Origin: Leucoraja ocellata
Taxonomy: Eukaryota
Reading direction: 5' to 3'
DNA: 53,823 nt
NCBI GenBank assembly: GCA_036785375.1
Contig: JAWMAR010001141.1
Span: 310,001-363,823, forward strand
Made by a program: the position numbers and the translations under genes. Shown in pieces: positions 361 through 23,634 of the stretch (positions are counted from its first letter, which is position 1; every line of letters begins with the position of its first letter). The notes beneath the pieces are model-generated. The model did not search any database. It was not told the origin of the DNA and saw only the letters and a program-made list of their open reading frames with translations.

Positions 361-1580
361 TTTTAAAAAAAAATTTTAAACAATTTTAAATTTTTAAAAT
401 TTTTTTAAATTATTTTTTTTAAAAGATAGAAATAAAAGGAGTAAGGAAAATGAGCAAGAATCGTGAAGGTGCAGGAAAGTGTTGGGAAAAGAAAGCCCCT
501 TAGGGAAGAAGTTAGAGAAGGAAGTAAAGAAAGGAAATAAGACCCTAAAAAGAAAAGAAAGAAAAGGAAAAACAATCACTCTATTGTAACACAAAACTCG
601 CAAAAAAGGATATACCAACCGTGTTTTGAAAAAAAAATGTATTTTATACCCCCCGTTACCAGATCCTGGTATTATTTATATTTTAAATTACTATTGCACC
701 TTATGCTATGTTTCTATGTTTCTATGAAGGAACTGCAGATGCTCGTTAAAACCGAAGATTGGCTCAAAAACCTAGAGTTATTCATTGGGTGAGGCAGCAT
801 CTTTGGAGTAAAGGAATAGGTGATGTTTTGAGTCGAGACCTTTCTTCAGACAAAGTTAGGGGAAAGGGAAACAAGGGTAACAAGGGAAACAAGTCTCTTA
901 CCTAGAGTAGGGGAATCAAGACTCAGGGGACAAGGCTTCAGGTGAAAGCGAAAATATTTAATAGGATCCTGAGGGGCATCATTTTTTTACACAGTGAGTT
1001 GTGGGTGTATGGAATGAGCTAACTGATGAGGTAGTTGAGGCAGGTGCTACAAAAACATTTTAAAGGCATTTGGACAGTTACATGAATTGGACTAGTTTAG
1101 TAGGAGATGGACCAAATGCTGGCAGGAGGAACTAGAGTAGATGGGGCATCTTAGTTGATGTGATATGACAATCAAGCACACTAAACGCTTGCGTTTAACA
1201 ATACAATACAAAACAGTACAAAATCGACCAAATGTCCTCGACATGGATTCAGTTCCAGTGCGTAAAAAAAGTTATGAGAAGAATATACCTTGCACTATAT
1301 TTGTTTTGAGTACTGTTGATATCAATCTTGTAATTGGAGATAGTGTGGTTGTCATTGGTTCTGTTATAAAAATATATGTTATTGTTAATGTTTAATGTTT
1401 TAGGTGTCACTCCTAATGTCACAGTATGTCACATGTCACTCCTAATGTCACTGTATGTCACATTGCACTTGTGGGCAGAGCACCAAGGCAAATTCCTTGT
1501 ATGTGAATACTTGGTCAATAAACCTATTCATTCATAAACCTATTCATTCATTATTCATTCATCATTCCTTCATAAGTTTA

Positions 1581-1665
1581 TTCAAGTTCTGTTGAGGCAA
1601 GGAAATAAAATTAAGTCTCAGCTGTTTTCACATGCAGTGAATAAAGAGAACAAGATTGTCAGATG
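1581..1665 (-). pseudogene. Orphan remnant of a linker-exon acceptor region (copies near 13867-13951 and 26430-26514)
   Basis: Aligns by eye with 48737-48822, the gene D linker acceptor and its intron flank. Exon similarity stops after about 10 nt at an (attc)n-tailed repeat. Confidence 0.55.
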
Positions 1666-2701
1666 GAACCCATTGCTTTGAGTAAAGTGCCAATTAGTTT
1701 GAGGGATACGGTGACTTTCCTTCAGTGGAATTGGACGTCTTAGTTGAGTTTAGTTTAGTTTAGAGATACAGCATGGAAACAGGACCTTTGGCCCACCTAG
1801 TTGATGCCAACCAGCTATCTCCTCTGCACACCAGCACTATCCTGCATACACTAGGGTCAATTTACAATTTTACCAAAGCCAATTAACCTACAAACCTGCA
1901 CGTCTTTGGAGTGTGGGAAGAAACCAAAGATCTCAGAGAAAAGCCACTTGGTCATGGGGAGAACATACAAACTCCGTACAGACAGCACCCGTATCGAACC
2001 CGCGCCCCTGGCGCTGAAATGAACGCAGCAACACCACCGCTGTACACCCGTGCCGCCCTATGTATCATTTATATTTTTGTGTGTCTATGTGTATGTGATG
2101 TTGCCACAAGAGTGATTTTCATTGTATCTGCACCTCACCATACGTGCACATAAGAATGACAGACTTGACTTGAAAACAGCTCAGCAAAGTATATTACAGT
2201 GATGTTCTCATGAGAAAAAGTACTTCCAGAACATTTGATCTGATGGGATGTCATAGCTTATAGTTTCCCTCTTCTAAATATTCTTCACAGTTAAAACCAT
2301 GAGGCATTCCCAGGATTGAATACAATTTATTCCACATAACTGCAATGTCATGCTACACAACACAAAATAATAAGTCATTGCTATAAAGGCTAGCAACATT
2401 GTTTAAATGGCACCTTTACTGAGTGAATATTGTGTAAACTAAGTTAATAATTTTAGCAGAAGAAGCATTAATTCTGTGCAGTCTATTATGAAAGCAAAAT
2501 GAAAAACACTTTGTCAATGCTCTTTATGGGCGACTATTTGCATACCTTGGGTTAGCAAGCAAAGAATTTCACTGTGACTTGTCACACGTGACAATAAAGA
2601 ATTAATTAATTAATTTATTCATTCAAAATAATAATGATCATTTGGTCTTGTTGGAGAGTTGTTTCTCAGTCACTATCACCAGTGGATCTTCATTCTGCCT
2701 T

Positions 2702-2737
2702 CTACGGCAAGCTGTGAGGTTTCGGTTCAATGGGTCC
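2702..2737 (-). CDS. Gene A exon 5, short cytoplasmic tail
   Basis: Poly-T-gcag acceptor, GPIEPKPHSLP*. Two of the three differences seen in B and C are synonymous in this frame. Confidence 0.7.
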   Translation of the reverse strand, partial: GPIEPKPHSLP

Positions 2738-5700
2738 CTGCAAAAAAAAAAATGTTGAAGACATCAGATAATTGACTCCGGGAATTTTGCTTTATTTCAC
2801 AAGGCCACTAACAACAGAATTCTGCTTCCAATTGGCCCAGTGACAGCATCCAAGAATTTGCTTGGATTTTGACTTTGATGCTATCTGTGTGGAGTTTGCA
2901 TGTTCTCGCTGTGTCCATGTGGGTTTCCTCCGCGAGCTCCGGTTTCCTCCGCGAGCTCCGGTTTCCTCCCACCTCCCAAAGACTTGTGGGTTTACTGGTT
3001 AATTGGCCAATGTGAATTTCCCCGAATGTGTTGGGAGTTGGGATGATAGAATGGGATAACATCGAACTAATGCGTACGGGTGATCAATGGCCTGATTGAC
3101 ACAAAGTGATGGAGTAACCCAGCGAGTCTGGCACGATCTCTGGAGAAAAAGGATGGGTGACATTTTAGGTCGGGACCCTTCTTCAAACTGAAAGTAGAGG
3201 GGAGGGAACTGCGTGTCTGGCGGACAGCGGCACCGGGAGCCCGCGGGTCCCTGGAGGGAGACCGCTTTTCAGGGCTCTCGCAACGGCGACTTCTCCCGCC
3301 TGAGTTGCGGGGTCGAAGAGCTCCTGGAGCGGCTTGGAATGGCCGCGGGACTCTGCGAGCGCACGCCGGGGGCTCCAACAACAGGACCCGGTGTGCGACC
3401 TTGCACCACCCGTCGTGGCTTTAATGGCCGCGGGACAATCGCCATCGCCAGCCGGGGGCTTTGACTTTGACTCTGACATCGGGGGGGGGGGGGGGGGGAG
3501 AGTGCAGTGGAGAGATAAGTTTTTTTGGCCTTCCATCACAGCGATGTGATGGATGTTTATGTAAATTATGTTGTGTCTTGGGTCTATTTGTTTGTAATAT
3601 ATGGCTGCAGAAACGGCATTTCGTTTGGACCTCAAGGGGTCCAAATGACAATTAAATTGAATCTTGAATCTTGAATCTTGGGGTTCAGGCAAGATGGTCT
3701 GCGTGGTCACAGTGGGTCAAAGGGCCTGTTTCCATGCTGTATTTCTCTGATTCAATGACACTACAACATCTACATCAAACACTTCAGTTCATTCTGAGCA
3801 CAAACATCTTGTCAAGACCAATTGATATCATCTATGTAGAGCATTGGTTTGGCCTATATTTGTGAAATACTTTATCTAAATGCTTTCCGTTTGTTTAATT
3901 TTATCAGCATGTTTGAAGATATTAATGGACATCATTTGGAAGCATTCAGCAATTCTGATGATCTCCGCAAAACATACCTTCCTTATACTTGTGAACAATG
4001 AGACTGAGATGCTGCAGATCCCAAGCAGAGCGAAGTACAGCCAGCGTCCCACATTCCATATCGTGTAACTGAGCAAAAGGGGAAAGATACAGAATCAGTG
4101 GGAGGAAACAGACTAGTTCGTGTTGGAAACATTCATATCCTGATTGCTGTGAAATATCTGCATGGAGCAGGGTACAGCAACAGAGCCCAGGGAGTTCAGC
4201 TGGGAAATTCCACCGTCCAGGATCTCAACCTGAAACATCACCGATCCATGTTCTTCAGAGATGCTGCCTGACTCGCTGAGTTACTCCAGCATTTTGTGTC
4301 TAGCGTTGATAAATTTAGATAAGAAAAGATGGGAGAAGTGACGAGTGGTATGTAAACACCAGCATGGGATCAGTTCAGTTGATCTTTTCTGTGCCTTAAA
4401 TCCTATGTGATCAGATGCAAGTCTGATTAAACAAAGTTGGAAGATCTCCAATGAGGTAGTTGGGAGGTCAGGATCGCTGGTGAGGGGATGATTCAGTTGC
4501 CTGATAACCGTTGGGAAGAAAATGTCCCTGACTCTGCAGGTGTGCGTTTTCAAACCTCAACTCTACCGCTGCACCACCATGCCACCCTCGACAACCTAGA
4601 GTTACTCCAGTACTTTGTGTTGTACTCAAGGTTCCAGCATCCAGCCAGGTTAATTCCCGGGATGGCGGGACTGTCATATGATGAAAGAATGGAGCGACTG
4701 GGCTTGTATTCACTGGAATTTAGAAGGATGAGAGGGTATCTTATAGACACATATAAAATTATTAAGGGATTGGGCACGTGAGATGCAGGAAACATGTTCC
4801 CGATGTTGGGGGAGTCCAGAACCAGGGGCCACATTTTAAGAATAAGGGGTTGGCCATTTAGAACTGAGACGAGGAAAACCTTTTCACCCAGAGAGGTGGA
4901 AATCTGTGGAATTCTTTGCCTCAGAAGGCAGTGCAGGCCGATTCACTGGATACATTCAAAAGAGAGTTAGATAGAGTTCTTAAAGCTAGCGGAATCAAGG
5001 GATATGGGGACTAGGCAGGAACGGGGTACTGATTGTGGATGGTCAACCATGATCACATTGAATGGCGGTGAATGGCCTACTCCTGCACTATTGTCGATCT
5101 ATCTATGTATCTATGTATGGATCAACAGTTCCTTGTGTCTCCACCTCTCATATTGAAAAGCTAGGCCAATCAAAACTTGAGCAAGTGAAAATTATACCTG
5201 TTAGAGAAACTGGTCGCATGATGATTGTTTTCGGATGTTACTTTTGTAGTTGAAGTAAATGCTACTGTTGTTGTTGTAGACGATTCAGTATTAGATTCAG
5301 GTTCTGTTGAGAAAAGGAAATAAAAGACAATTAAAGATAGACAAAATATGCTGGAGTAACTCAGCGGGACAGGCAGCATCTCTGGAGAGAAGGAATGGGT
5401 GAAGTTTACAATAGAAACATAGAAATTAGGTGCAGGAGTAGGCCATTCGGCCCTTGGAGACTGCACCGCCATTCAATATGATCATGGCTGATCATCCAAC
5501 TCAGTATCCCGTACCTGCCTTCTCTCCATACCCCCTGATCCCCTTAGCCACAAGGGCCACATCTAACTCCCTCTTAATATAGCCAATGAACTGGCCTCAA
5601 CTACCCTCTGTGGCAGAGAGTTCCAGAGATTCACCACTCTCTGTGTGAAAAAAGTTCTTCCCATCTCGGTTTTAAAGGATTTCCCCCTTATCCTTAAGCT

Positions 5701-8700
5701 GTGACCCCTTGTCCTGGACTTCCCTAACATCGGGAACAATCTTCCTGCATCTAGCCTGTCCAACCCCTTAAGAATTTTGTAAGTTTCTATAAGATCCCCT
5801 CTCAATCTCCTAAATTCTAGAGAGTATAAACCAAGTCTATCCAGTCTTTCTTCATTCGGGTCTGAGGACGGGTCTCGGGCCGAAACGTCACCCATTCCTT
5901 CCCTCCAGAGACGCTGCCTGTCCCGCTGAGATACTCCAACATTTCAAGTTCAAGTTCACATATTGTCACATGCACCAATTAAGGTACAGTGGTATTTGAG
6001 TTATCATACAGCCATACAAGTTTAAAAACATAATGCAATACACAATATTTTTAACATAAACATCCACCACAGTGGAATCATCATTCCTCACTGTGATGGA
6101 AGGCAACAAGGTTCACTCATCTTCCTCCTTTGTTTACCCGTGGTGGTCGGGGCCTTGAACCCTCAGCACTGCCACTGCCGACGGCCCGATGTTCAAGCCC
6201 TCTCGTCGGGATGATGGAGACTCCGGCGTCGGGGAGGAACGGAAACACTCCGCGGCTTCACGGTATTAAAGTCCACAAGCCCCGCGGTTGGAGAGCTTCC
6301 ACAGCGATTCTCAGCAAAGGATCACAGCTCCGCAATGTTAAAGTCCGCGTCGCCCTTGCGGCGAAGATCCAGCCCGGTCTCCAGGAAAGGCCGCATCCAT
6401 CCAGTTGTTAGTCCGCGGGGAGGGGACGGAGACGTGACACGGGGAAAGATCACATCTCTGTTGCGGTAAGTGACTGAAAACGGTTTCGCCCCCTCCCCTC
6501 CCCTCCCCTCACCCCCCACATTAAAAAACACAGAGAGACATTAAAACATACATTTTAGACAGACTGACAATAACAAAAAAGTCGAACTAACACACAGGCT
6601 GCTGGCGAGGCTGCCATCTCAGCGCCATCCAGTGACGCATCTATCTGCTCTATAGATTTTGTGTCTATGTTCGATTGAAACAGCATCTGCAGTTCTTTCC
6701 AACACAATAAAAGACATTTCCCTGTTTGCCGTTTCATCATTATTCAAGATCCAGGGGCATCATCTGCACACTCCCATGAGGGGTAAGAACAGAATTCGGC
6801 CAAACAGCAAAGATCCCGGCACTGATCCCTATGGTGCATCATTAAGGGCGGCACGGTGGCGCAGCTGTAGAATTACTGCCTTACAGCGCCAGGGACCCGG
6901 GTTCGATCATGACCACGGGTACTTGTCTGTCTGTCTGTCTGGAGTTTGTACATTCTCCCCCTGACCTGCGTGAGTTTTCTCTGAAAACTTCGGTTTCCCC
7001 CCACACTCCAAACACGTACAGGTTTACAGGTTAATTGGCTTGGTATAAATGTAAAACGTACCGTCAGATACTTGGAGCTGAACGTTAAACAATGGATCCA
7101 AGCCAGATGCATCAATTCCACAGCTGTACCATCCTGTATCGCTAGAGTGAAAATCCTCCACAGTCACAGTAAATTTTCCTTGTGCCGGGTTATCTGTGAT
7201 TGACGCTCTTCCACGTCTGTGTTGCCCATTTGTTTTCACTACAACTGAACACGAGCGAGTCCACCCATGACACCAGTATTTTGTGTGTGAACGGTACCGT
7301 GCTACATAGTAACAATCGATTGTGATATTTTTCCCCACAACTCCTCTTACAGGTGTATTTGCCGTCAGAGCACCTGAAACTGAGAAGAAAAATCATCAGA
7401 ACATGTACAGGACAAATCTACTTAACACAGCGTTTGTTGTCCCATCCACTCATCCCCTAATCAACGATGGGCCGAATGGTCCAACCCGTGTGTGGACATT
7501 CACTTACCCTTGAGCCAAGCACAAAGTGCCCGTGTAACTCAGCAGATCTGGCAGCATCTGTGGAGGGAATGGACACGTGACGTGTCGGGTTGGGACCCTG
7601 CTTCAGACTGATTAAAGTAGGGTGGGGAAAGCTGGAAGAGAGGTGGAGATGGGATAAAGCCTGGCAAGTGACAGGTGGAAGGTAGACACAAATTGCTGGA
7701 GTAACTCAGCGGGACAGGCAGCACAACAAGTGGATACAGATGAGGGGGGAATTTTGACTGGTTCACGAGTGGACAAAGACTGGAGGTGAAAAGCGGTGAA
7801 AAGGTTGTCAGATGAGGAGAGATGAGAAGCGAAATGTAAAGACAGAGGGAGGGGTATATTTGGTAGGGGACAGGGTGAAAGGGAGGAAGAGGCATGGGTT
7901 AAATGGTGCACAGGAAAGTGAGAGAGGGTAGGGGGATGTGCAATGTAAAATTGGAGAATTTAATGATCATAAGATATTTTTCTATTGATTGAATTGATTG
8001 AAAAATACAGCATGGAAAGGTGCCCTTTGGCCCATCGAGTCCTCTTCACACTAAAGATAGACACAAGGTGCTGGAGTAACTCAGCGGGTCAGGCAGCATG
8101 TCTGGAGAAATAGAATGCGTGATGTTTCGGGATTGGGACCCTTCTTCAGACACCCTTCTAAGTTACTCCAGCACTTTGTTTCTATCTTTGGTACAAACCA
8201 GCACCTGCAGTTCTTTGGTCCTAACTGTTTACACCAGTTGGGCAGCACAGTAGCACAGCAGAAGAGTGGCTGCCTTACAGCGCCAAGGACCCGGGTTTGA
8301 TCCTGACTATGGATGCTGAGACACTAGAGACAGGAAACATGTTCCCGATGTTGGGGGAGTCCAGAACCAGGGGCCACAGTTTAAGAATAAGGGGTAAGCC
8401 ATTTAGAACGGAGACAAGGAAACACAGAGAGTTGTGAGTATGTGGAATTCTCTGCCCATTCTCTGGAAACTTGCAAGAGAGAGCTAGATAGGGCTCTTAA
8501 AGATAATAGTTAGGGGATATGGGGAGAAGGCAGGAAAGGGGTACTGATTGGGGATGATCAAGCATGATCGCATTCAATAAACAATGGACAATAGACAATA
8601 GGTGCAGGAGTAGGGCATTTGGCCCTTCGAGCCAGCACCGCCATTCAATGTGATCATGGCTGATCATCTCCGTTCTAAATGGCTTACCCCTTATTCTTAA

Positions 8701-11092
8701 ACTGTAGCTCCTGGTTCTGGACTCCCCCAACATCGGAAACATGTTTCCTGCCTCTAGCGTGACCAAACCCTTAATAATCTTAAAATAATTTTACAATAAT
8801 CTTACATGGCAGTGCTAGCTCGAAGGGCCGAATGGCCTACTCCTGCACCTATTGTCTATTGATGAGTACTGAGGCTTGTGGATCCCTACAACAACCTTAT
8901 CCCCCAAATGCACGTATATCGTTGGCCTGTTTTATGGAGGGTAAACCTTATTTGCCATCATCCCCATCTATAAACAAGGAAATAGTCACCTACACTTCAC
9001 GCTGCCTTGCAAGGCCACCAGCATAATCATGGAGCAGTTTCATCTCAGTCACTCCTTCTTTACCTGTCTACCATTAGGCACGAGGAACAGAAGTTTGAAC
9101 CCAATGCTCTAGATTCAGAGACAGTTTTCTTACCAACTGTTATCAGGCAACTGACCCATCCTCTCAGTAGCTAGAGCGCAGTCCTGGCCTCCTATTTACC
9201 CCCTTGAACAATCAATAATTGGACTTCTTTGGACTAAACTAAACTAAACTAGTAAAGCAATGATACTAGATTACCGGAAATGATCTGGTGAATGAAGACA
9301 GTTAATGTTGGCCTTCACCTGCATCTGAGCATCAGTGATAACATTGAAAAAAAGAATTTACTTGGTAACAATAAATTATTAATATTGCATGCTGATGACT
9401 TTGACAAATATGCATAGTTGATGTCCAAGAACAAGAAGGAAATGGCTACATTGCAAGAGCAACCCACAGCCCAAGAGGAACTGGACGTCAAACAACATCT
9501 GAACTTTAAATAAGAGGAAGTGTTGTAAAATGGAGACAATTGTTTTGGCATTATTGCTTGGCTGCTGTTAGTGAGTGCAAGCAAGCAATAAAACAATGTT
9601 TCATGAATAGACAGGGTCCCTTTGCACTTTGACACCGTTACTTTAGTTTAGTTTAGTTTAAGATAGAGCATGGAAACTGGCCCTTTGGCCCAACGTGACC
9701 GTGCTGACCTAGTATCTTGTACACTAGGGACAATTTACATAGTCCTTATTCCCTATTTTTAGAGGCCAATTAACCTACAAATCTGTGCGTCTTTGGGATG
9801 TGGGAGGAAACCAGGGGACTGGGTAAAAAACCCATGCGGTCACAGGGTGAAAGTGCAAACTCCCTACAGACAGTCCCCTTAGTTAGGATTGAACCCAGGT
9901 CTCTGGTACTGTAAGGCACCGCTGTGCCACTGTCCCAGTCACTTGTAATTGTCTCTGTTTTTCATTCACAGTCGCTTTGTGCTGTCAGATACATTGGCGG
10001 CCATGATTTATGTGTGGCACAGTGATGGAGACAGGAGGAGATTGGAAGACCACACTCTAATATTGAGACAAAAGAGATTGCAGATGCTGGAATCTGGAAC
10101 AACAAACAGCACACTGAAAGGACTCAGTGGGTCATGGAGGTTTGAAGGCAAAAAAGTAAAGTGTAAGTTGTTCTTTCAGATCGAGACCCTGCATCAGGAC
10201 TGAGAGGAGACAGAGATGTTTGGCAACATATAGATGTACTAATGGGTGGGAGGGTTGGGGCTGGTTGAGGAAGATGGAACTGGATGAAGAGGATGTGTTT
10301 GATAGAGAATACACAAGCAGAACATGAGATGTTGATTGATAGTTCAAAACTCAATGGTACAAACATTACATTTTCCAATTTTGGGTAATTCACACCCTCT
10401 GGTGTTCTCCTCACACACAAGCCCACCTGCCGATCCTGATTCAACCTTTCCTGCCTCCCTTGCTCAGTCCCGATACAGGGTCCTCTTCACATTCACAGAT
10501 GCAGGCTGACCCACTGAGTTCCTCTTTCTTGATCCACGCCCCAATATTGTTCAGTTATCTTTACATCTGCAAGCATTTAACTATCTCCACTGCAGAAATG
10601 GTACACAAGACCCAGTTACATTCTGATCACCAAAATGAATATCAAAATAAAACTATGGCGGTTAACAAAATCTAACACGAAAACAAAAAAATAATCAGGT
10701 GGTCAGGGCGCATCTGTGGGGAGAGATAAAGTTAGGTTTTAGGTCGAAGGATCTCTGATCTGAAAGGGTAACTCTTTTTCTCGGCACACCTGCTAAGTAT
10801 TTCCAGCATATGTAAAGGAAGGAACTGCAGATGCTGGTTTACACCGAAGATAGACACAAAATGCTGGAGTAACTCAGAGGGACAGGCAGCATCTCTGGAT
10901 AGAAGGTATGGGTGACATTTCGGGTCGAGACTTTTCTTCAGCCTGTCCCGCTGAGTTACTCCAGCACGTTGTGACTATCTCATACTTCCCGTAGAGTCTG
11001 GTCACATGACCGTCCAAATCAAGCTGTTACTTACCGGGCAGGGAATAAATGAGCAGCATTGGAATCCACATAGTTTTATCCAAGGAGACCAT
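2702..11092 (-). CDS. CD300/pIgR-like (MDIR-like) single-V activating-type receptor, gene A (~202 aa, 5 exons)
   Basis: complement(join(2702..2737,3978..4068,5198..5303,7062..7379,11035..11092)) = 609 nt, open. All introns GT-AG, phases 1,1,2,0. Leader MVSLDKTMWIPMLLIYSLP, V domain, S/T stalk, TM SYTIWNVGRWLYFALLGICSISVSLF, tail GPIEPKPHSLP*. Confidence 0.88.
3211..3680 (+). mobile_element. Unit-A-specific retroposon insertion with a (ttgaatc)n tail
   Basis: Absent in B (gggaact|gggttcag) and C. GC-rich body, poly-G tract and tandem 3' tail. Confidence 0.75.
3978..4068 (-). CDS. Gene A exon 4, transmembrane with Arg
   Basis: YTIWNVGRWLYFALLGICSISVSLFTSIRK. Acceptor ttttgctcag|, donor AAG|gtatgt. 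Confidence 0.88.
4645..5115 (+). mobile_element. CR1 LINE 3' fragment
   Basis: RLIPGMAGLSYDERMERLGLYSLEFRRMRG. Copies near 16480-16965 and 29025-29505. Confidence 0.88.
5198..5303 (-). CDS. Gene A exon 3, Ser/Thr-rich stalk
   Basis: EPESNTESSTTTTVAFTSTTKVTSENNHHATSFSN. Acceptor ttctcaacag|, donor AG|gtataa, phase 1 to 2. Confidence 0.85.
5410..5854 (-). mobile_element. CR1 LINE 3' fragment, inverted relative to 4645-5115
   Basis: ERLDRLGLYSLEFRRLRGDLIETYKIL..RVVNLWNSLPQ. Copies near 17252-17700 and 29800-30248. Confidence 0.88.
5858..5893 (+). ncRNA. Minimal type I hammerhead ribozyme-like motif in a Penelope-derived repeat (copies 17703-17738, 30251-30286)
   Basis: GGGU-CUGAGGA-stem II-GAAACGUC-ACCC. 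Stem I GGGU/ACCC is perfect, stem III is the palindrome ACGU, and stem II is degenerate in this copy. Confidence 0.5.
5945..6630 (-). mobile_element. Non-autonomous retroposon with a (ttgaac)n tail
   Basis: CpG-rich body, variable poly-C tract and tandem tail. Present in all three units. Family not identified. Confidence 0.5.
6846..7045 (+). mobile_element. tRNA-derived V-SINE next to the V-exon donor
   Basis: A box TGGCGCAG, B box GGTTCGATC and V-domain core tggagtttgtacattctcccc. Confidence 0.8.
7062..7379 (-). CDS. Gene A exon 2, V-type Ig domain (CD300/TREM/pIgR type)
   Basis: ITIDC..KYWC..C..DTGWYSC with the extra C-C' Cys pair. Acceptor ttctcag|, donor G|gtacgt, 318 nt. Confidence 0.95.
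9473..9522 (+). promoter_or_regulatory. Candidate intronic PU.1 sites
   Basis: AAGAGGAACT at 9473 and near-consensus AAGAGGAAGTG at 9512-9522. The second site is kept in all units, the first is deleted in C. Confidence 0.3.
11035..11092 (-). CDS. Gene A exon 1, signal peptide
   Basis: ATG at 11092 (alternative 11071), hydrophobic MWIPMLLIYSLP, phase-1 donor G|gtaagt. Confidence 0.85.
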
Positions 11093-11160
11093 GTTAGCAC
11101 TGACCTGCTGATCAGTTCTTAGTCCTCAGACTGAACGGTCTGACAAATATGGCATGTATT

Positions 11161-11202
11161 AAGAATGAGGAAGAAGGGAACAGGAAACCTGATTGTGAAA
11201 CC
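11161..11202. promoter_or_regulatory. Candidate TATA-less proximal promoter of gene A (ETS/PU-box and IRF-like cores), repeated in B and C
   Basis: GAGGAAG, CAGGAAA and GTGAAACC lie 75-110 bp upstream of the ATG. Motif match only. Confidence 0.3.
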
Positions 11203-11261
11203 AGAATGAGACATGATAAAATCTGAAACTTTAGAATTTGAAGTTGTCTCAGTTAAATTTA

Positions 11262-11650
11262 AGGTACACAAAAATGGTGGAGAAACTCAGCGGCTGCAGC
11301 AGCATCTATGGAGCGAAGGAAATAGGCAACGTTTCGGGCCGAAACCCTTCTTCAGACTGATAGGGGGTGGCGGGGAGAAGGAAGGAAAAAGGAGGAGGAG
11401 AAGCCCGAGGGCTGAGGGAAGGGGAGGAGACAGCAAGGGCTGACAAAATTGGAAGAATTCGATGTTCATGCCCGCAGGATGCAGACTCCCCAGGCGAAAT
11501 ATGAGGTGCTGTTCCTCCAATTTCCGGTGTTGCTCACTCTGGCAATGGAGGAGACCCAGGACAGAGAGGTCGGAATGGGAATGGGAGGGAGAGTTGAAGT
11601 GTTGAGCCACGGGAGGTCAGGTAGGTTCTTGCGGACCGAGCGAAGGTGTT
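11262..11650 (-). mobile_element. 5'-truncated Penelope-like element (GIY-YIG C-terminus plus terminal repeat), copies near 23806-24193 and 36534-36930
   Basis: VAQHFNSPSHSHSDLSVLGLLHCQSEQHRKLEEQHLIFRLGSLHPAGMNIEF followed by a ctgaaga..gaaacgt motif. Confidence 0.85.
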
Positions 11651-14600
11651 TAATAAAAGTTAGATTTAGTTCTGTTTAGTCAGTTAAATTTAGTTCTGAT
11701 TAGTTTAGTAAACAGGTCCTTCGGCCCACCGAGTCCATGCCGATCAGCAATCCTTGCACATTAACACTATCCTACACACACTAGGGACAGTTTTTTTACT
11801 TTTACCAAGCCAATTTACCTACATACCTGTACGTCTGGAGTGTAAAATAAAAGTAATCCAATTTTCATTGACTGATGTATATAGTCCAGCCTTTTATTTT
11901 TTTATTTTTTACTTTTGGAGATAATTGTGGAAAGAGGCCCTTTGTCCCACTAAGTCCGCACCGACCAGCGATGACCCCGCACACTAGCACCATTCTACAC
12001 TCTAGAAACAGTTTACAATTTTTCTTACCAAAGGATTCAACCAACAAACCTGTACGTCTTTGGGATGTGGGAGGAAACCGGAGCACCCGGAGGAAACCCA
12101 TGCAGTCGCAGGGAGAATGTACAAACTCTGCACGGACAGCACCCATAGTCGGGATTGAATCTAGGTCTCTGGCGCTGTGAGAGGGGGCGGGCGTCTTTAA
12201 TCTGTCTGGGGTGACATGGCTCTTGGGTTAGGCTGGGATCATTCTCTGCGGGATGATCTTAGTGCGGGAGACAAGTGTAGGACAGGTGTACTGACTGTGG
12301 GCAGCCACTTTGGAAGTGATTGCCCACCAGTCTCAAAAGCCGCTGTGTCTCCCTGTCCCTGGGATTAGCAGGGGGTGACCAAACAGCACAATATTCCCCT
12401 CCCGCTCCATGCCAACACGAAGGGCAACGATCCCAAGGCTTTAGCGTCAGGAACAGCGGGCAGGTGACAAAGAGTGGTGAATCTCTGGAATTCTGTGCCA
12501 CAGGAGGTTGTTGAGGCCAGTTCATTGGCTATATTTAAAAGGGAGTTAGATGTGGCCCTTGTGGCTAAAGATATCATGGGGTATGGAGAGATGGCAGGCA
12601 CAGGATACTGAGTTGGATGATCAGCCATGATCATATTGAATGGCGGTGCAGGCTCGAAGGGCCGAATGGCCTACTCCTGCACCTATTTTCTATGTTTCTT
12701 TTCTTTTTTTTTTTAAAACAATTTTTAATTTTTTTAATTTTTTTTTGTTATTTTTAAAAATAGATAGAAATAAAAGAAGTAAGGAAAGTGAGCAAGAATC
12801 GTGAAGGTGCAGGAAAGTGTTGGGAAAAGAAAGCCCCTTAGGGAAGAAGTTAGAGAAGGAAGTAAAGAAAGGAAATAAGACCCTAAAAAGAAAAGAAAGA
12901 AAAGGAAAAACAATCGCTCTATTGTAACACAAAACTCGCAAGAAAGGATATACCAACCGTGTTTTTTTTTTTTTAATGTATTTTATACCCCCCGTTACCA
13001 GATCCTGGTATTATTTATATTTTAAATTATTATTGCACCTTATGCTATGTTTCTATGAAGGAACTGCAGATGCTCGTTAAAACCGAAGATTGACTCAAAA
13101 ACCTAGAGTTATTCATTGGGTGAGGCAGCATCTTTGGAGTAAAGAAATAGGTGATGTTTTGAGTCAAGACCTTTCTTCAGACAAAGTTAGGGGAAAGGGA
13201 AACAAGGGTAACAAGGGAAACAAGTATCTTACCTAGAGCAGGGGAATCAAGACCCAGGGGACAAGGCTTCAGGTGAAAGGGGAAATATTTCATAGGATCC
13301 TGAGGGGCATCATTTTTTTACACAGTGAGTTGTGGGTGTATGGAATGAGCTAACTGATGAGGTAGTTGAGGCAGGTGCTACAAAAACATTTTAAAGGCAT
13401 TTGGACAGTTACATGAATTGGACTAGTTTAGTAGGAGATGGACCAAACGCTGGCAGGAGGAACTAGAGTAGATGGGGCATCTTAGTTGACGTGATATGAC
13501 AATCAAGCACACTAAACGCTTGCGTTTAACAATACAATACAAAACAATACAAAATCGACCAAATGTCCTCGACATGGATTCAGTTCCAGTGCGTAAAAAA
13601 ATTTATGAGAAGAATATACCTTGTACTATATTTGTTTTGAGTACTGTTGATATCAATCTTGTAATTGGAGATAGTGTGGTTGTCATTGGTTCTGTTATTA
13701 AAATGTATGTTATTGTTAATGTTTAATGTTTTAGGTGTCACTCCTAATGTCACTGTATGTCACATTGCACTTGTGGGCAGAGCACCAAGGCAAAATCCTT
13801 GTATGTGAATACTTGGTCAATAAACCTATTCATTCATCATTCATTCATCATTCCTTCATAAATTTATTCAAGTTCTGTTGAGGCAAGGAAATAAAATTAA
13901 GTCTCACCTGTTTTCACATGCAGTGACTAAAGAGAACAAGATTGTCAGATGGAACCCATTGCTTTGAGTAAAGTGCCAATTAGTTTGAGAGATACGGTGA
14001 CTTTCCTTCAGTGGAATTGGACGTCTTAGTTGAGTTTAGTTTAGAGATACAGCATGGAAACAGGACCTTTGGCCCACCTAGTTGACGCCAACCAGCTATC
14101 TCCTCCGCACACAAGCACTATCCTGCATACACTAGGGTCAATTTACAATTTTACCAAAGCCAATTAACCTACAAACCTGCACGTCTTTGGAGTGTGGGAA
14201 GAAACCAAAGATCTCAGAGAAAACCCATTTGGTCATGGGGAGAACATACAAACTCCGTACAGACAGCACCCGTATCGAACCCGCGTCCCTGGCGCTGAAA
14301 TGAAGGCAGCAACACCACCGCTGTACACCCGTGCCGCCCTATGTATCATTTATATTTTTGTGTGTCTACGTGTATGTGATGTTGCCACAAGCGCGATTTT
14401 CATTGTATCTGCACCTCACCATACGTGCACATAAGAATGACAGACTTGACTTGAAAACAGCTCAGCAAAGTATATTACAGTGATGATCTCATGAGAAAAA
14501 ATCCTTCCAGAACATTTGATCTGGGATGTCATAGCTTATAGTTTCCCTCTTCTAAATATTCTTCACAGTTAAAAGCATGAGGCATTTCCAGGATTGAATC

Positions 14601-14999
14601 CAATTTATTCCACATAACTGCAATGTCATGCTACACAACACAAAATAATAAGTCATTGCTATAAAGGCTAGCAACATTGTTTAAATGGCACCTTTACTGA
14701 GTGAATATTGTGTAAACTAAGTTAATAATTTTAGCAGAAGAAGCATTAATTCTGTGCAGTCTATTATGAAAGCAAAATGAAAAACACTTTATCAATGCCC
14801 TTTATGGGCGACTATTTGCATACCTTGGGTTAGCAAGCAAAGAATTTCACTGTGACTTGTCACACGTGACAATAAAGTATTAATTAATTAATTTATTAAT
14901 TAATTTATTAATTAATTCATTCAAAATAATAATGATCATTTGGTCTTGTTGGAGAGCTGTTTCTCAGTCACTATCACCAGTGGATCTTCATTCTGCCTT

Positions 15000-15035
15000 C
15001 TACGGCAAGCTGTGAGGTTTTGGTTCAATGGGTCC
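15000..15035 (-). CDS. Gene B exon 5, short tail
   Basis: GPIEPKPHSLP* after a poly-T-gcag acceptor. Confidence 0.7.
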   Translation of the reverse strand, partial: GPIEPKPHSLP

Positions 15036-18000
15036 CTGCAAAAAAAAAACTTAGAAGTCATCAGATAATTGACTCTGGGAATTGTGCTGTATTTCACAAT
15101 GCCACTAACAACAGAATTCTGCTTCCAATTGGCACAGTGATGCAGCTGATAGAGCTGCTGCCTCCCAGCGTCCAAGAATTTGCTTGGATTTTGACTTTGA
15201 TGCTATCTGTGTGGAGTTTGCATGTTCTCGCTGTGTCCATGTGGGTTTCCTCCGCGAGCTCCGGTTTCCTCCCACCTCCCAAAGACTTGTGGGTTTACAG
15301 GTTAATTGGCCAGTGTGAATTTCCCCTAGTGTGTTGGGAGTTGGGATGAGAGAATGGGATAACATCGAACTAATGCGTACAGGTGATCAATGGCCTGATC
15401 GGCACAAAGTGCTGGAGTAACCCAGCGAGTCTGGCGCGATCTCTGGAGAAAAAGAATGGGTGATATTTCTGGTCGGGACCCTTCTTCAAACTGAAAGTAG
15501 AGGAGAGGGAACTGGGTTCAGATGAGATGGTCTGCGTTTGTTACAGTGGGTCAAAGGGCCTGTTTCCCAGTTGTTTTTCTCTGATTCAATGACACTACAA
15601 CATCTACATCAAACACTTAATTTCATTCTGAGCACAAACATCTTGTCAAGACCAATTGATATCATCTTCGTAGAGCATTGGTTTGGCCTATATTTGTGAA
15701 GTACTTTATCTAAACGCTTTCCGTTTGTTTAATTTTATCAGCATGTTTGAAGGTGTTAATGGACATCATTTGGAAGCATTCAGCGATTCTGATGATCTCC
15801 GCAAAACATACCTTCCTTATACTTGTGAACAATGAGACTGAGATACTGCAGATCCCAAGCAGAGCGAAGTACAGCCAGCGTCCCACATTCCATATCATGT
15901 AACTGAGCAAAAGGGGAAAGATACAGAATCAGTAGGAGGAAACAGACTAGTTCGTGTTGGAAACATTCATAGCCTGATTGTTGTGAAATCTCTGCATGGA
16001 GCAGGGTACAGCAACAGAGCCCAGGGAGTTCAGCTGGGAAATTCCACCATCCAGGATCTCAAACTGAATCCTCACCTATCCATGTTCTTCAGAGATGCTG
16101 CCTGACTCGCTGAGTTACTCCAGCATTTTGTGTCTAGCGTTGATAAAGTTAGATAAGAAAAGATGGGAGAAGTGACGAGTAGTATGTAAACACCAACATG
16201 GGATCAGTTCAGTTGATCTTTTCTGTGCCTTAAATCCTATGTGATCAGATGCAAGTCTGATGAAACAAAGTTGGAACATCTCCAATGAGGTAGATGGGAG
16301 GTCAGGATCGCTGGTGAGGGGATGATTCAGTTGCCTGATAACCGTTGGGAAGAAAATGTCCCTGACTCTGCAGGTGTGCGTTTTCAAACCTCAACTCTAC
16401 CGCTGTACCACCATGCCACCCTCGACAACCTAGAGTTACTCCAGTACTTTATGTTGTACTCAAGGTTCCAGCATCCAGCCAGGTTAATTCCCGGGATAGC
16501 GGGACTGTCATATAATGAAAGAATGGAGCGACTGGGCTTGTAGTCACTGGAATTTATAAGGATGAGAGGGTATCTTATAGACACATATAAAATTATTAAG
16601 GGATTGGGCACGTGAGATGCAGGAAACATGTTCCCGATGTTGGGGGAGTCCAGAACCAGGGGCCACAGTTTAAGAATAAGGGGTAGGCCATTTAGAACTG
16701 AGACGAGGAAAACCTTTTCACCCAGAGAGGTGTGAATCTGTGGAATTCTTTGCCTCAGAAGGCAGTGCAGGCCGATTCACTGGATACATTCAAAAGAGAG
16801 TTAGATAGAGTTTTTAGGGCTAGCGGAATCAAGGGATATGGGGACAAGGCAGGAACGGGGTACTGATTGTGGATGGTCAACCATGATCACATTGAATGGC
16901 GGTGCTGGCTCGAAGGGCAGAATGGCCTCCTCCTGCACTATTGTCGATCTATCTATGTATCTATGTATGGATCAACAGTTCCTTGTGTCTCCACCTCTCA
17001 TATTGAAAACAAGGCCAATCAAAACTTGAGCAAGTGAAAATTATACCTGTTAGAGAAACTGGTCGCACGATCATTGTTTTCGGATGTTACATTTGTAGTT
17101 GAAGTAAATGCTACTGTTGTTGTAGACGATCCAGGATTAGATTCGGGTTCTGTTGAGAAAAGGAAATAAAAGAATTAAAGATAGACAAAATATGCTGGAG
17201 TAACTCATCGGGACAGGCAGCATGTCTGGAGAGAAGGAATGGGTGAAGTTTAGAATAGAAACATAGAAATTACGTGCAGGAGTAGGCCATTCGGCCCTTC
17301 GAGACTGCACCGCCATTCAATATGATCATGGCTGATCATCCAACTCAGTATCCCGTACCTGCCTTCTCTCCATACCCCCTGATCCCCTTAGCCACAAGGG
17401 CCACATCTAACTCCCTCTTAAATATAGCCAATGAACTGGCCTCAACTGCCCTCTGTGGCAGAGAGTTCCAGAGATTCACCACTCTCTGTGTGAAAAAAGT
17501 TCTTTTCATCTCGGTTTTAAAGGATTTCCCCCTTATCCTTAAGCTGTGACCCCTTGTCCTGAACTTCCCTAACATCGGGAACAATCTTCCTGCATCTAGC
17601 CTGTCCAACCCCTTAAGAATTTTGTAAGTTTCTATAAGATCCCCTCTCAATCTCCTAAATTCTAGAGAGTATAAACCAAGTCTATCCAGTCTTTCGTCAT
17701 TCGGGTCTGAGGATGGGTCTCGGGCCGAAACGTCACCCATTCCTTCCCACCAGAGACGCTGCCTGTCCCGCTGAGATACTCCAACATTTCAAGTTCATGT
17801 TCGCATATTGTCACGTGCACCAATTAAGGTACAGTGGTATTTGAGTTATCATACAGCCACAAGTTTAAAAACATAACGCAATACACAATAGTTCTAACAT
17901 AAACATCCACCACAGTGGAATCATCATTCCTCACTGTGATGGAAGGCAACAAGGTTCAGTCATCTTCCTCCTTTGTTTACCCGTGGTGGTCGGGGCCTTG

Positions 18001-21000
18001 AACCCTCAGCACTGCCACTGCCGACGGCCCGATGTTCAAGCCCTCTCGTCGGGATGATGGAGGCTCCGGCGTCGGGGAGGAACGGAAACACTCCGCGGCT
18101 TCACGGTATTAAAGTCCACAAGCCCCGCGGTTGGAGAGCTTCCACAGCGATTCTCAGCAAAGGATCACAGCTCCGCAATGTTAAAGTCCGCGTCGCCCTT
18201 GCGGCGAAGATCCAGGCCAGTCTCCAGGAAAGGCCGCATCCATCCAGTTGTTAGTCCGCGGGGAGGGGACGGAGACGTGACACCGGGAAAGATCACATCT
18301 CTGTTGCGGTAAGTGACTGAAAACGGTTTCGCCCTCCCCTCACCCCCCCCCCCCCCCCCCTCACCCCCCCTCCCCTCCCCTCACCCCCCACATTAAAAAA
18401 CACAGAGAGACATTAAAACATACATTTTAGACAGACTGAAAATAACAAAAAAGTCGAAATAACACACAGGCTGCTGGCGAGGCTGCCATCTCGGCGCCAC
18501 CCAGTGACGCATCTATCTGCTCTATAGATTTTGTGTCTATGTTCGATTAAAACAGCATCTGCAGTTCTTTCCAACACAATAAAAGACATTTCCCTGTTTG
18601 CCGTTTCATCATTATTCAAGATCCAGGGGCATCATCTGCACACTCCCAGGAGGGGTAAGAACAGAATTCGGCCAAACAGCAAAGATCCCGGCACTGATCC
18701 CTATGGTGCATCATTAAGGGCGGCACGGTGGCGCAGTTGTAGAATTACTACCTTACAGCGCCAGGGACCCGGGTTCGATCATGACCACGGGTACTTGTCT
18801 GTCTGTCTGGAGTTTGTACATTCTCCCCCTGACCTGCGTGAGTTTTCGCTGAAAACTTCGGTTTCCCCCCACACTCCAAAGACGTACAGGTTTACAGGTT
18901 AATTGGCTTGGTATAAATGTAAAACGTACCGTCAGATACTTGGAGCTGAACGTTAAACATTGGATCCAAGCCAGATGCATCAATTCCACAGCTGTACCGT
19001 CCTGTATCGTAAGAGTGAAGATCCTCCACAGTCACAGTAAATATTGCTCGTGCCGGGTTATCTGTGATTGACCATCTTCCACGTCTGTGTTGCCCATTTG
19101 TTTTCACTACATCTGAACACGAGCGAGTCCACCCATGACACCAGTATTTTGTGTGTGAACGGTACCATGTTCCATAGTGACAATCGATTGTGATATATTT
19201 CCCCACAACTCCTCTTACAGGTGTCTTTGCCGTCAGAGCACCTGAAACTGAGAAGAAAAATCATCAGAACATGTACAGGACAAATCTACTTAACACAGCG
19301 TTTGTTGTCCCATCCACTCTTCCCCTAATCAACGATGGGCCGAATGGTCCAACCCGTGTGTGGACATTCACTTACCCTTGAGCCAAGCACAAAGTGCCCG
19401 TGTAACTCAGCAGATCTGGCAGCATCTGTGGAGGGAATGGACACGTGACGTGTCGGGTTGGGACCCTGCTTCAGACTGATTAAAGTAGGGTGGGGAAAGC
19501 TGGAAGAGAGGTGGAGATGGGATAAAGCCTGGCAAGTGACAGGTGGAAGGTAGACACAAATTGCTGGAGTAACTCAGCGGGACAGGCAGCATAACAAGTG
19601 TTTGGTGGATACAGATGAGGGGGAAATTTTGACTGGTTCACGAGTGGACAAAAACTGGAGGTGAAAAGCGGTCAAAAGGTTGTCAGATAAGGACGGAAGA
19701 GAACCGAAATGTAAAGACAGAGGGAGGGGTATATTTGGTAGGGGACAGGGTGAAAGGGAGGAAGAGGCATGGATTAAATGGTGCACAGGAAAGTGAGAGA
19801 GGGTAGGGGGGTGTGCAACGTAAAATTGGAGAATTTAATGATCATAAGATATTTTTCTATTGATTGAATTGATTGAAAAATACAGCATGGAAAGACGCCC
19901 TTTGGCCCACCGAGTCCTCTTCACACTAAAGATAGACACAAGGTGCTGGAGTAACTCAGCGGGTCAGGCAGCATGTCTGGAGAAATAGAATGCGTGATGT
20001 TTCGGGATTGGGACTTTTCTTCAGACACCCTTCTAAGTTACTCCAGCACTTTGTTTCTATCTTTGGTACAAACCAGCACCTGCAGTTCTTTGGCCCTAAC
20101 TGTTTACACTAGTTGGGCAGCACAGTAGCACAGCAGAAGAGTGGCTGCCTTACAGCGCCAAGGACCCGGGTTTGATCCTGACTATGGATGCTGCCTGTAC
20201 AGAATTTGTACGTTCTCCCTGTGACCGCATGGGTTTCCTCTGTGTGTTCCAGTTTCCTCCCACAATCCAAACATGAGTAGGTTTGTAAGTTAATTGGCTT
20301 CTGTAAATTACCCCAAGGGTGTAGGATAGAACTGGTGCACGGGTAATCGTTGGTCGGCTTGGACATTGTGGGCCGAAGGGCCTGTTCAAGGCTGTATCTC
20401 TAAAACTAACTAATTGTCTTATTGCATTTAATGAGCTGTGAGAATATTCCCCAAGGTCCTTCTGTTCGTCCACACTCCCTCAACATCCATATATTAATGT
20501 CTTTATTTAGACCTCTTTGTCAAATGTAATTCCTCTCACTTCTCTGGATTAAACTGGCTTTGCCACTTTTCTGCCCTACTGGTTTGTTCATCCATATACG
20601 CCCTGGGGTCAAAAGCCTTCTCCTCCCTGTCAACCATCCAGCTGACCTTTGTCTCATCTGCAGAGGACTTCACCACGCCCCCTACATTTATCTACATAGA
20701 TGATTCTTGCTATTGAGGGAGTGCAGCGTAGGTTTACAAGGTTAATTCCTGGGATGGCGGGACTGTCATATGCTGAGAGAATGGAGCAGCTGGGCTTGTA
20801 CACTCTGGAACTTAGGATGAGAGGGGATCTTATTGAAACATGTAAGATTATTAAGGGTTTGGACACACTAGAGACAGGAAACATGTTCCCGATGTTGGGG
20901 GAGTCCAGAACCAGGGGCCACAGTTTAAGAATAAGGGGTAAGCCATTTAGAACGGAGACAAGGAAACACTGAGAGTTGTGAGTATGTGGAATTCTCTGCC

Positions 21001-23634
21001 CATTCTCTGGAAACTTGCAAGAGAGAGCTAGATAGGGCTCTTAAAGATAATAGGTAGGGGATATGGGGAGAAGGCAGGAAAGGGGTACTGATTGGGGATG
21101 ATCAAGCATGATCGCATTCAATAAACAATAGACAATAGGTGCAGGAGTAGGGCATTTGGCCCTTCGAGCCAGCACCGCCATTCAATGTGATCATGGCTGA
21201 TCATCTCCGTTCTAAATGGCTTACCCCTTATTCCTAAACTGTGGCTCCTGGTTCTGGACTCCCCCAACATCGGAAACATGTTTCCTGACTCTAGCGTGTC
21301 CAAACCCTTAATAATCTTAAAATAATTTTACAATAATCTTACAATAATCTTACATGGCAGTGCTGGCTCGAAGGGCCGAATGGCTTACTCCTGTACCTAT
21401 TGTCTATTGATGAGTACTGAGGCTTGTGCATCCCTACAACAACCTTATCCTCCAAATGCACGTATATCGTTGGCCTGTTTTATGGAGGGTAAACCTTATT
21501 TGCCATCTTTCCCATTTATAAACAAGGAAATAGTCACCTACACTTCACGCTGCCTTGCAAGGCCACCAGCATAATCATGGAGCACTTTCATCCCAGTCAC
21601 TCCTTCTTTACCTGTCTACCATTAGGCACGAGGGTCAGAAGTTTGAACCCAATGCTCTAGATTCAGAGACAGTTTTCTTCCCAACTGTCTTCAGGCAACT
21701 GACCCATCCTCTCACTAGCTAGAGCGCAGTCCTGACCTCCTATTTACCCCCTTGAACGATCAATAATTGGACTTCATTGGACTAAACTAAACTAAACTAG
21801 TATAGCAATGATCCTAGATTACCGGAAATGATCTAGTGAATGAAGACAGTCAATGTTGGCCTTCATCTGCATCTGAGCATCAGTGATAACATTGAAAAAA
21901 AAAATTAACTTGGTAACAATAAATTATTAATATTGCATGCTGATGACTTTGACAAATATACATAGTTGACATCCAAGAACAAGAAGGAAATGGCTACATT
22001 GCAAGAGCAACCCACAGCCCAAGAGGAACTGGACGTCAAACAATATCTGAACTTTAAATAAGAGGAAGTGTTGTAAAATGGAGACAATTGTTTTGGCATT
22101 ATTGCTTGGCTGCTGTTAGTGAGTGCAAGCAAGCAATAAAACAATGTTTCATGAATAGAAAGGGTCCCTTTGCACTTTGACACTGTTAGTTTATTTTAGT
22201 TTAGTTTAAGATGGAGCATGGAAACTGGCCCTTCGGCCCAACTTGTCCGTGCTGACCTAGTATCTTGTACACTAGGGACAATTTACATAGTCCATATTCC
22301 CTATTTATAGAGGCCAATTAACCTACAAACACATGTGTCTTTGGGGTGTGGGAGGAAACCAGAGGACTGGGAAAAAACCCATGCGGTCACAGGGAGAAGG
22401 TACTAACTCCATACAGACAGGTCCCTTAGTCAGGATCGAACCCAGATCTCTGGTACTGTAATGCACCGCTGTGCCACTGTCCCAGTCACTTGTAATTGTC
22501 TCTGTTTTTCATTCACAGTCGCTTTGTGCTGTCAGATACATTGGCGGCCATGATTTATGTGTGGCACAGTGATGGAGACAGGAGGAGATTGGAAGACCAC
22601 ACTCTAATATTGAGACAAAAGAGATTGCAGATGCTGGAATCTGGAACAACAAACAGCACACTGGAAGGACTCAGTGGGTCATGGAGGTTTGAAGGCAAAA
22701 AAGTGTAAGTCGTTCTTTCAGATCGAGACCCTGCATCAGGACTGAGAGGGGACAGAGTTGTTTGGCAACATATAGATGTACTAATGGGTTGGAGGGTTGG
22801 GGCTGGTTGAGGAAGATGGAACTGGATGAAGAGGATGTGTTTGATAGAGAATACACAAGCAGAACACAAGATGTTGATTGATAGTTCAAAACTCAATGGT
22901 ACAAACATTACATTTTCCAATTTTGGGTAATTCACACCCTCTGGTGTTCTCCTCCCACACAAGCCCACCTGCCGATCCTGATTCAACCTTTCCTGCCTCC
23001 CTTGCTCAGTCCCGATACAGGGTCCTCTTCACGTACACAGATGCTGGCTGACCCGCTGAGTTCCTCTTTCTTGATCCACGCCCCAATATTGTTCAGTTAT
23101 CTTTACATCTGCAAGCATTTAATTATCTCCACTGCAGAAATGGTGCACAAGACCCAGATACATTCTGATCACCAAAATGAATATCAAAATAAAACTACGG
23201 AGGTTAACAAAATCTAACACGAAACCAAAAAAATAATCAGGTGGTCAGGGCGCATCTGTGGGGAGAGATAGAGTTAGGTTTTAGGTCGAAGGATCTCTGA
23301 TCTGAAAGGGTAACTCTTTTTCTTGGCACACCTGCTAAGTATTTCCAGCATATGTAAAGGAAGGAACTGCAGATGCTGGTTTACACCGAAGATAGACACA
23401 AAATGCTGGAGTAACTCAGAGGGACAGGCAGCATCACTGGATAGAAGGTATGGGTGACATTTCGGGTCGAGACTTTTCTTCAGCCTGTCCCGCTGAGTTA
23501 CTCCAGCACGTTGTGACTATCTCGTACTTCCCGTAGAGTCTGGTCACATGACCGTCCAAATCAAGCTGTTACTTACCGGGCAGGGAATACATGAGTAGCA
23601 TTGGAATCCACATAGTTTTATCCAAGGAGACCAT
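15000..23634 (-). CDS. CD300/pIgR-like (MDIR-like) single-V activating-type receptor, gene B (~201 aa)
   Basis: complement(join(15000..15035,15812..15902,17047..17149,18930..19247,23577..23634)) = 606 nt, open, splice sites intact. Confidence 0.88.
15812..15902 (-). CDS. Gene B exon 4, transmembrane with Arg
   Basis: YMIWNVGRWLYFALLGICSISVSLFTSIRK. Confidence 0.88.
17047..17149 (-). CDS. Gene B exon 3, stalk
   Basis: EPESNPGSSTTTVAFTSTTNVTSENNDRATSFSN, 103 nt. Confidence 0.85.
18930..19247 (-). CDS. Gene B exon 2, V-type Ig domain
   Basis: VSGALTAKTP..IDCHYGTWYRSHTKYWCHGWTRSC..DTGRYSC, 318 nt. Confidence 0.95.
20115..20410 (+). mobile_element. Full-length V-SINE (also 33086-33381, truncated by deletion in unit A at ~8318)
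   Basis: tRNA-like head, V core and tail ggccgaagggcctg..tgtatctctaaa. Confidence 0.8.
20698..21400. mobile_element. CR1 3' fragment with an internal inverted CR1 piece (also ~8320-8860 and ~33669-34385)
   Basis: The plus strand encodes ILAIEGVQRRFTRLIPGMAGLSYAER, and a reverse-oriented copy lies at ~21120-21320. Confidence 0.8.
23577..23634 (-). CDS. Gene B exon 1, signal peptide
   Basis: MVSLDKTMWIPMLLMYSLP, donor G|gtaagt. Confidence 0.85.

Follow-up and report, generated by a model that had tools for sequence, protein, structure and literature searches.

Related receptor families

KIR, LILR, NITR and SIRP are rapidly diversifying multigene Ig receptor families that evolve by tandem birth and death, comprise both activating and inhibitory members and show an excess of replacements in the ligand-binding domain. 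The present analysis concerns a tandem array of three genes (A, B and C) for small CD300/pIgR-type receptors in the skate Leucoraja ocellata, situated in a stretch of 53,823 nucleotides (contig JAWMAR010001141.1 of assembly GCA_036785375.1, positions 310,001 to 363,823) that is called the window throughout and within which all coordinates are given. The V exons of these young paralogs, coding for the immunoglobulin (Ig) variable domain, have undergone accelerated amino-acid change, an observation that is real and well supported.

The three copies share with CD300 molecules and with domain 1 (D1) of pIgR a single V-set Ig domain provided with a second cysteine pair, and the nearest skate proteins carry the NCBI name 'CMRF35-like molecule', i.e. 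a CD300-type name. Since identity to mammalian CD300/pIgR members is just 29-38%, no orthology can be claimed. CD300A and CD300C were presented, in the section of the article considered here, as an inhibitory/activating pair with gene conversion in the ectodomain (PMC12447643). According to the same section, conversion keeps the primate CD300A/C ectodomains alike (PMC12447643); in the skate, by contrast, neighbouring ectodomains appear to be driven apart.

The MDIRs of clearnose skate, as summarised in a passage citing Cannon et al. 2006 (PMC3031540), form a multigene family that comprises both activating and inhibitory receptors with CD300/TREM/pIgR-like Ig domains. Genes A, B and C resemble them by description only, which may serve as a lead to MDIR membership; protein searches returned no match named MDIR. 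In the open-access literature, neither a dN/dS analysis (ratio of replacement to synonymous rates, omega below) of MDIR genes nor a selection analysis of skate CD300-like genes was found.

A further parallel is provided by bovine CEACAM32 and CEACAM1. In the portion of that study drawn on here, the two paralogs are most alike in the introns flanking the N-domain (IgV) exon and strongly different within it, which the authors ascribed to natural selection on the ligand-binding face, the exon thus escaping concerted evolution (PMC7042247). The skate array is similar in that its introns are alike and its ligand-binding exons apart. CEACAM32 nevertheless belongs to another Ig family and host and displayed, in the same portion, a mean dN/dS of 0.65 with one significant codon (PMC7042247), unlike the A-B pair with its zero synonymous changes and ~20% of sites modelled at omega ~11. 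All three skate copies also share the same signalling module, unlike the CEACAM32/CEACAM1 case.

Replacement differences between the V exons

Self-BLAST showed that the first 37.5 kb of the window consist of three ~12.5 kb units arranged head to tail, with one five-exon minus-strand gene per unit. Each gene encodes a leader, a single CD300/pIgR-type IgV domain, a Ser/Thr stalk, a transmembrane (TM) helix with an arginine and an 11-residue tail. The V exon of a diverged neighbour, gene D, was used as outgroup.

1-12339, no strand assigned: tandem unit A, truncated by the window start (self-BLAST and MAFFT)
12340-24882, no strand assigned: tandem unit B (self-BLAST and MAFFT)
24883-37465, no strand assigned: tandem unit C (self-BLAST and MAFFT)
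7062-7379, minus strand: V exon of gene A, 318 nt, phase 1 at both ends (Pfam V-set, E=4.5e-11)
18930-19247, minus strand: V exon of gene B, 318 nt, ungapped match to the V exon of A
31929-32249, minus strand: V exon of gene C, one codon longer than in A and B
52106-52423, minus strand: V exon of gene D, a diverged neighbour and the outgroup (~80% DNA identity)

The limits of the A exon (7062-7379) proved right: acceptor and donor fit, and the leader-V junction is as in related skate proteins. Aligned without gaps over 318 bases (7062-7379 versus 18930-19247), the V exons of A and B displayed the 17 nucleotide differences, 15 amino-acid changes and zero synonymous changes reported in the initial annotation, together with every residue pair it had named (YYVAR/HYGTW, A/W, QGK/RAI, S/Y and W/R). 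Thirteen of the 15 changed codons differ by a single change and the other two by two changes each. Over 318 aligned bases, gene C has 31 differences from A and 28 from B. The description of C as diverging further at many of the same positions holds for five of the 15 A/B-variable codons, where it has a third residue; at seven codons C equals B and at three it equals A.

The 17:0 ratio of replacement to synonymous changes departed from the available sites (71.5 synonymous, 237.5 replacement; Fisher p=0.010), and the probability that 17 random non-stop mutations would all be replacing is 0.003-0.011 across the transition biases tested. Multi-base mutation events were rejected as a source of the 17:0 ratio, given random clustering of the sites (P=0.25) and a probability of zero synonymous changes of 0.02-0.05 even with merely 11 independent events. 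A pairwise codon model gave a likelihood ratio of 9.49 against omega=1 (p=0.002), with omega unbounded. The V exon was also more replacement-biased than the remaining exons of the gene (17:0 versus 7:4, Fisher p=0.016). In those, A and B differ by one replacement and one synonymous change in the leader exon, five replacements, one synonymous change and one codon insertion/deletion (indel) in the stalk exon, one replacement and one synonymous change in the TM exon, and one synonymous change in the tail exon. The TM exons had been called nearly invariant; only two differences in 91 nt were indeed present, yet this is about the background rate.

Site models were fitted to the four V exons (A, B, C and D) with Goldman-Yang code written by the authors rather than PAML or HyPhy, and without a recombination term. 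The site-model check that had been proposed was run as M1a versus M2a and gave a ratio of 25.5 (p=3e-6), ~20% of the sites being placed at omega ~11.5. With a reduced procedure the observed ratio was 24.0, a value reached by none of 41 sets simulated under M1a (95th percentile 5.2, maximum 7.7).

It is extremely improbable that mis-assembled or collapsed alleles, or sequencing errors, produced spurious differences among the copies. Assembly is difficult for tandem repeats that are 12.5 kb long and nearly identical, and the short-read runs that supplied contigs may include the assembly's own sample. Against this, contigs of run X1 reproduced the A exon over 173 nt with no mismatch and over 189 nt with one, as did a contig of run X3 over 119 nt with none, and B's letters appeared at at least four of the 17 sites (7092, 7244, 7311 and 7357) among the contig rows listed; at these four, the B letters are the states inferred to be ancestral. 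Three distinct versions exist, and hence not two alleles of one locus. Errors would, moreover, neither avoid synonymous sites nor keep all frames open. Assembly slips, which the initial annotation had kept in mind, were thus ruled out by contigs of other runs.

A bulk RNA run with a different species label (X24, ~5% sampled) contained no V exon reads; the stalk and TM exons belonging to a related copy were covered by 3-4 reads. This is evidence neither for nor against expression of the A, B and C copies.

Rate of change relative to noncoding DNA

Background divergence between A and B amounted to 7/696 (1.0%) within 350 bp on each side of the V exon, 31/1396 (2.2%) within 700 bp and 332/11176 (2.97%) over all noncoding DNA of the unit. 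At 5.35%, the A-B V exon exceeded both the noncoding total (p=0.017) and the 350-bp flanks (p=7e-5). The excess was larger for A-C (9.75% versus 3.18%, p=1e-7) and B-C (8.8% versus 3.2%, p=3e-6). Lineage-specific changes in the V exon numbered nine for A, six for B and 20 for C or the A/B stem, and on each of the three lineages the exon evolved at 1.6-3.2 times the rate of its local flanks. When sliding 318-bp segments of the unit were ranked, as had been suggested, the V exon was the unit maximum for A-C (31 differences, a count reached by 0.27% of segments) and near the top for B-C without being the maximum (28 differences, reached by 1.3%).

The initial annotation had set the exon against an almost identical adjacent intron. 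A single difference in 343 positions was confirmed (7381-7723 versus 19249-19591), but the very next 106 bp (7724-7829), beside a 1-bp indel, contain a tight group of nine A-B substitutions, so the contrast is partly flattering.

Relaxed constraint on redundant duplicates, with 17:0 as a lucky draw among many comparisons, is very unlikely to account for these figures. Drift cannot exceed the neutral rate, whereas A-B replacement-site divergence in the V exon is 7.2% versus 1-3% in noncoding DNA: a neutral rate of 1.0-3.0% would yield 2.4-7.1 replacements where 17 were observed (Poisson P for at least 17, 8e-10 to 1e-3), a probability that is too kind because noncoding divergence is patchy. The rate excess is present on all three lineages, every reading frame and framework residue is intact, and the M1a null simulated for the site model, which combines neutral and purifying sites, falls far short of the observed ratio. 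What such relaxation has in its favour is an omega of ~1 versus D, not significantly above 1 for A-C and B-C, and an expectation of only 0.7-2.1 synonymous changes, so that zero alone is unremarkable. Many features of the window had also been inspected beforehand, and p values near 0.01 are therefore weaker than their face value.

New substitutions or conversion

With D as outgroup, six of the A/B differences were derived in A and four in B; the rest fell where three or four paralogs differ, and at the second base of one codon all four nucleotides occur among the paralogs. For the A/W codon, the preferred reading starts from the state in C and takes one single step on each of two lineages. A-specific and B-specific changes are interleaved along the exon, 11 of the 17 sites lie no more than 7 bp from another one (mean under random placement 8.8, P=0.25), and there is no donor in the window, since neither C nor D matches two adjacent A/B variants. 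Interleaving, absence of clustering and absence of adjacent matches to C or D together argue for many independent substitutions on both lineages. The six closest relatives also lack one member of the A/B residue pair at 10 of the 15 sites, in keeping with new substitutions. A single large conversion tract was ruled out by the alternating lineage pattern, and no contiguous donor-matching run on one lineage was found with C and D, within the window, as the donors compared.

Short-tract conversion from elsewhere in the genome's large CD300/pIgR-like family would have pasted variant patches into the V exons, so that the differences would be imported and selection would act at most on their retention. 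We regard this as possible but rather unlikely. The three units are mosaic, with a local tree that changes along the unit, and 16% of the noncoding differences lie no more than 1 bp from another, suggestive of complex events. Close relatives contain both the A and the B residue at five of the 15 variable sites; A's F and R occur in P0151 (191 residues, from a transcript-like contig), and B's W in P0151 and P0030, which together with P0033 represents NCBI proteins of little skate and thorny skate. Eight further sites, at which A and B differ from C, have C matching D and are clustered in codons 3-13 and 53-54, beside a codon indel. Patches from a C-like donor (15% synonymous) would come without synonymous changes with P=0.06, and paralogs are known to convert in CD300A/C (PMC12447643) and in CEACAM (PMC7042247), as far as the relevant parts of these articles go. 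Patches from a D-like donor, on the other hand, would be 23% synonymous (P for 0 of 17, 0.011). The interleaved changes do not form tracts on one lineage, their spacing is no tighter than random, C and D never supply two adjacent variants within the window, and the residues unseen in close relatives likewise speak against imported patches.

A hypermutation-like origin was also rejected: three of the 17 sites lie in WRC/GYW motifs, which cover 42 of 309 positions (p=0.41), and the transition to transversion ratio is 7:10 versus 185:156 in noncoding DNA (p=0.33).

Position of the changes in the V domain

The domain was assigned to V-set (PF07686) by Pfam, with scores of 43.4 (A) and 37.4 bits (B) against a cut-off of 26. 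Among solved structures, phmmer retrieved pIgR (1.3e-46 for the whole chain, 1.6e-11 for domain 1) and CLM-1/CD300lf (1.4e-19), and Foldseek, run with a predicted model (mean confidence score pLDDT 81.5), gave TM-scores of 0.80 for CD300lf (37% identity) and 0.78-0.79 for pIgR D1. A second cysteine pair joining strands C and C', in addition to the canonical B-F disulfide, is a hallmark of the CD300/pIgR family. Across an alignment of 16 domains, no variation was observed in either pair (C22, C86, C36 and C43), in the Trp and the Arg/Asp pair or in the D-x-G-x-Y-x-C motif. Among 1.84 billion representative proteins, 2409 relatives were retrieved, the closest being skate and ray proteins named CMRF35-like or pIgR-like; a word-indexed protein search gave just five proteins, all from outside the present genome.

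Across 53 related domains, the 15 A/B sites have a mean entropy of 1.84 bits versus 1.13 bits at the other 88 sites (Mann-Whitney p=0.0014); only three of them rank among the 15 most variable positions. The B-C, D-E and F-G loops form the membrane-distal tip of V domains. In the predicted model, the B-C loop contains residues 25-27 and is adjoined by residue 23, the D-E loop contains residues 66-68, and residue 96 lies at the end of the F-G loop or edge of strand G. Residues 7, 17, 45, 58, 76, 79 and 83 are placed outside these loops, and A equals B in the C'-C'' region and the F-G loop proper. Only about half of the 15 sites are thus found in membrane-distal loops, with the others spread over the domain; judged from the model, the evidence for a focus on the ligand-binding site is partial.

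Residue 17 (7329 in A, 19197 in B) lies in an N-I-T glycosylation sequon in A and in four skate relatives; the Asn is Y in B and D in C. The stalk of B gains an N-V-T through a K-to-N change (near 5235 and its B equivalent).

Probable diversifying selection and its limits

Positive diversifying selection on the V domain surface, on a background of mosaic concerted evolution, is probably what shaped these exons, and the most likely cause of the acceleration is diversifying selection with some contribution from conversion. The initial annotation had offered selection or conversion as alternatives; replacement excess, lineage rates, rank among segments and site model all support the faster V-exon replacement on which that inference was built.

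Several results nevertheless weigh against selection. Omega exceeds 1 for A-B but is 1.7-2.0 for A-C and 1.5-1.8 for B-C, neither significantly above 1, and ~1.0 for A, B and C versus D (synonymous divergence, dS, 0.21-0.24); the M0 estimate over the four V exons, 1.54, is not significantly above 1 either. The site-model test rests on four sequences only, and recombination inflates such tests and generates false positives, which weakens the support that it brings since the units are visibly mosaic. For A-B, the V exon is no outlier among sliding segments, 9% of which contain at least 17 differences. The stalk exon, at 5:1 plus a codon indel, is replacement-rich too. On the branch to C, five synonymous changes (dS 0.074 versus ~3% in noncoding DNA) hint at imported sequence or an older split. 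Lastly, the predicted model places variable sites across the whole domain, membrane-proximal loops included.

The history of the locus can be read as follows. A recent tandem triplication of the ~12.5 kb unit produced three copies, each encoding a small activating-type receptor. Since the copies arose, their V exons have accumulated replacements at two to three times the pace of nearby noncoding DNA on every lineage, with framework residues kept fixed; copy structure, replacement excess and rate excess are shown by the data. Selection on the exposed ligand-binding surface may have led the three neighbours to recognise different variants of a ligand, while recombination and conversion between units would hold the remainder of each unit ~97% alike. 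Ligands or pathogens would presumably drive the selection, and the receptors would signal through an adaptor.

A more far-reaching idea, which we find unlikely, is that the array works as a germline repertoire generator. Unequal crossing-over and conversion would homogenise promoter, introns and signalling exons of neighbouring genes, while selection would force, and micro-conversion reshuffle, a restricted choice of residues at ~20 V surface positions, several of these choices persisting across skate species. If true, KIR- or NITR-like combinatorial innate recognition would have existed already in cartilaginous fish, in the CD300/pIgR lineage.

The locus offers a single-base view, on one contig, of a young innate-receptor array in a cartilaginous fish that may be splitting binding specificities with one signalling module kept. 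It provides a clean example, from an early-branching jawed vertebrate, of a pattern known from mammalian KIR, LILR, CEACAM and CD300, and names about 15-20 residues as candidates for binding differences. The pattern is ordinary in kind, new only for the present family and host, and leaves current ideas unchanged.

Structure of the receptor genes

Taken singly, the exons of gene A match P0151, P0030 and P0033 in the same order, and the reading frame is uninterrupted in every exon of A, B and C. The remaining exons of gene A are the following.

11035-11092, minus strand: leader exon, with ATG at 11092, 19/19 residues equal to the start of P0030 and P0033, and a gtaagt donor
5198-5303, minus strand: Ser/Thr-rich stalk exon, 79% over 39 residues to the stalk of P0151
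3978-4068, minus strand: transmembrane exon with an arginine in the membrane span, 97% to P0033 and P0151 over 30-31 residues
2702-2737, minus strand: cytoplasmic tail exon and stop, 10/12 residues equal to the C-termini of P0033 and P0151

The arginine lies inside the hydrophobic span and the 11-residue tail is devoid of tyrosine; this is the short-tailed organisation, without immunoreceptor tyrosine-based inhibitory motif (ITIM), of an activating member. To judge from these sequence features, the products of genes A, B and C are probably activating-type receptors that would need an adaptor.

Read-through of the stalk donor (5185-5197 in A, and the equivalent positions in B and C) gives an eight-residue open tail followed by a stop, the same in all three genes. 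The NCBI little-skate model P0030 (169 aa) terminates with exactly this tail, which may represent a soluble isoform that has been conserved or else an artefact of annotation.

Gene D possesses a C2 exon in addition and is a distinct neighbouring gene. Beyond the triplication, minus-strand exon matches were recorded at 41456-41539, 43341-43598, 49980-50303 and 53520-53822. They correspond to a leader, a cytoplasmic-type exon and two C2-type Ig exons, and belong to gene D and at least one further receptor gene.

Divergence and mosaic structure of the tandem units

In a three-way MAFFT alignment, substitutions between units amounted to 3.05% for A-B (358/11752), 3.35% for A-C and 3.28% for B-C. 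Private sites numbered 171 in A, 170 in B and 200 in C, which indicates a near-star tree of the units overall. Locally the tree shifts: runs of A-only sites occur at ~1-400 and of B-only sites at ~9600-10000, and C-only sites predominate at ~6000-8800. The units are thus mosaic, as expected if they exchange sequence. Noncoding A-B differences reach a maximum of 29 per 318-bp segment.

Three noncoding regions of unit A (53-690, 2884-3530 and 9481-10100) contain 17-29 A-B differences per 318 bp. Most of these are unique to a single unit (A near the start, B at ~9600-10000), and the regions look like conversion tracts from donors beyond the window. The units also differ by larger segments: ~470 bp at 3209-3680 in unit A are absent from B and C, and ~670 bp at 20194-20861 in B and 33165-33832 in C are absent from A. 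Very high word depth was observed in all runs over much of 4162-6126, 6651-7174 and 7437-7800, which indicates introns full of dispersed repeats.

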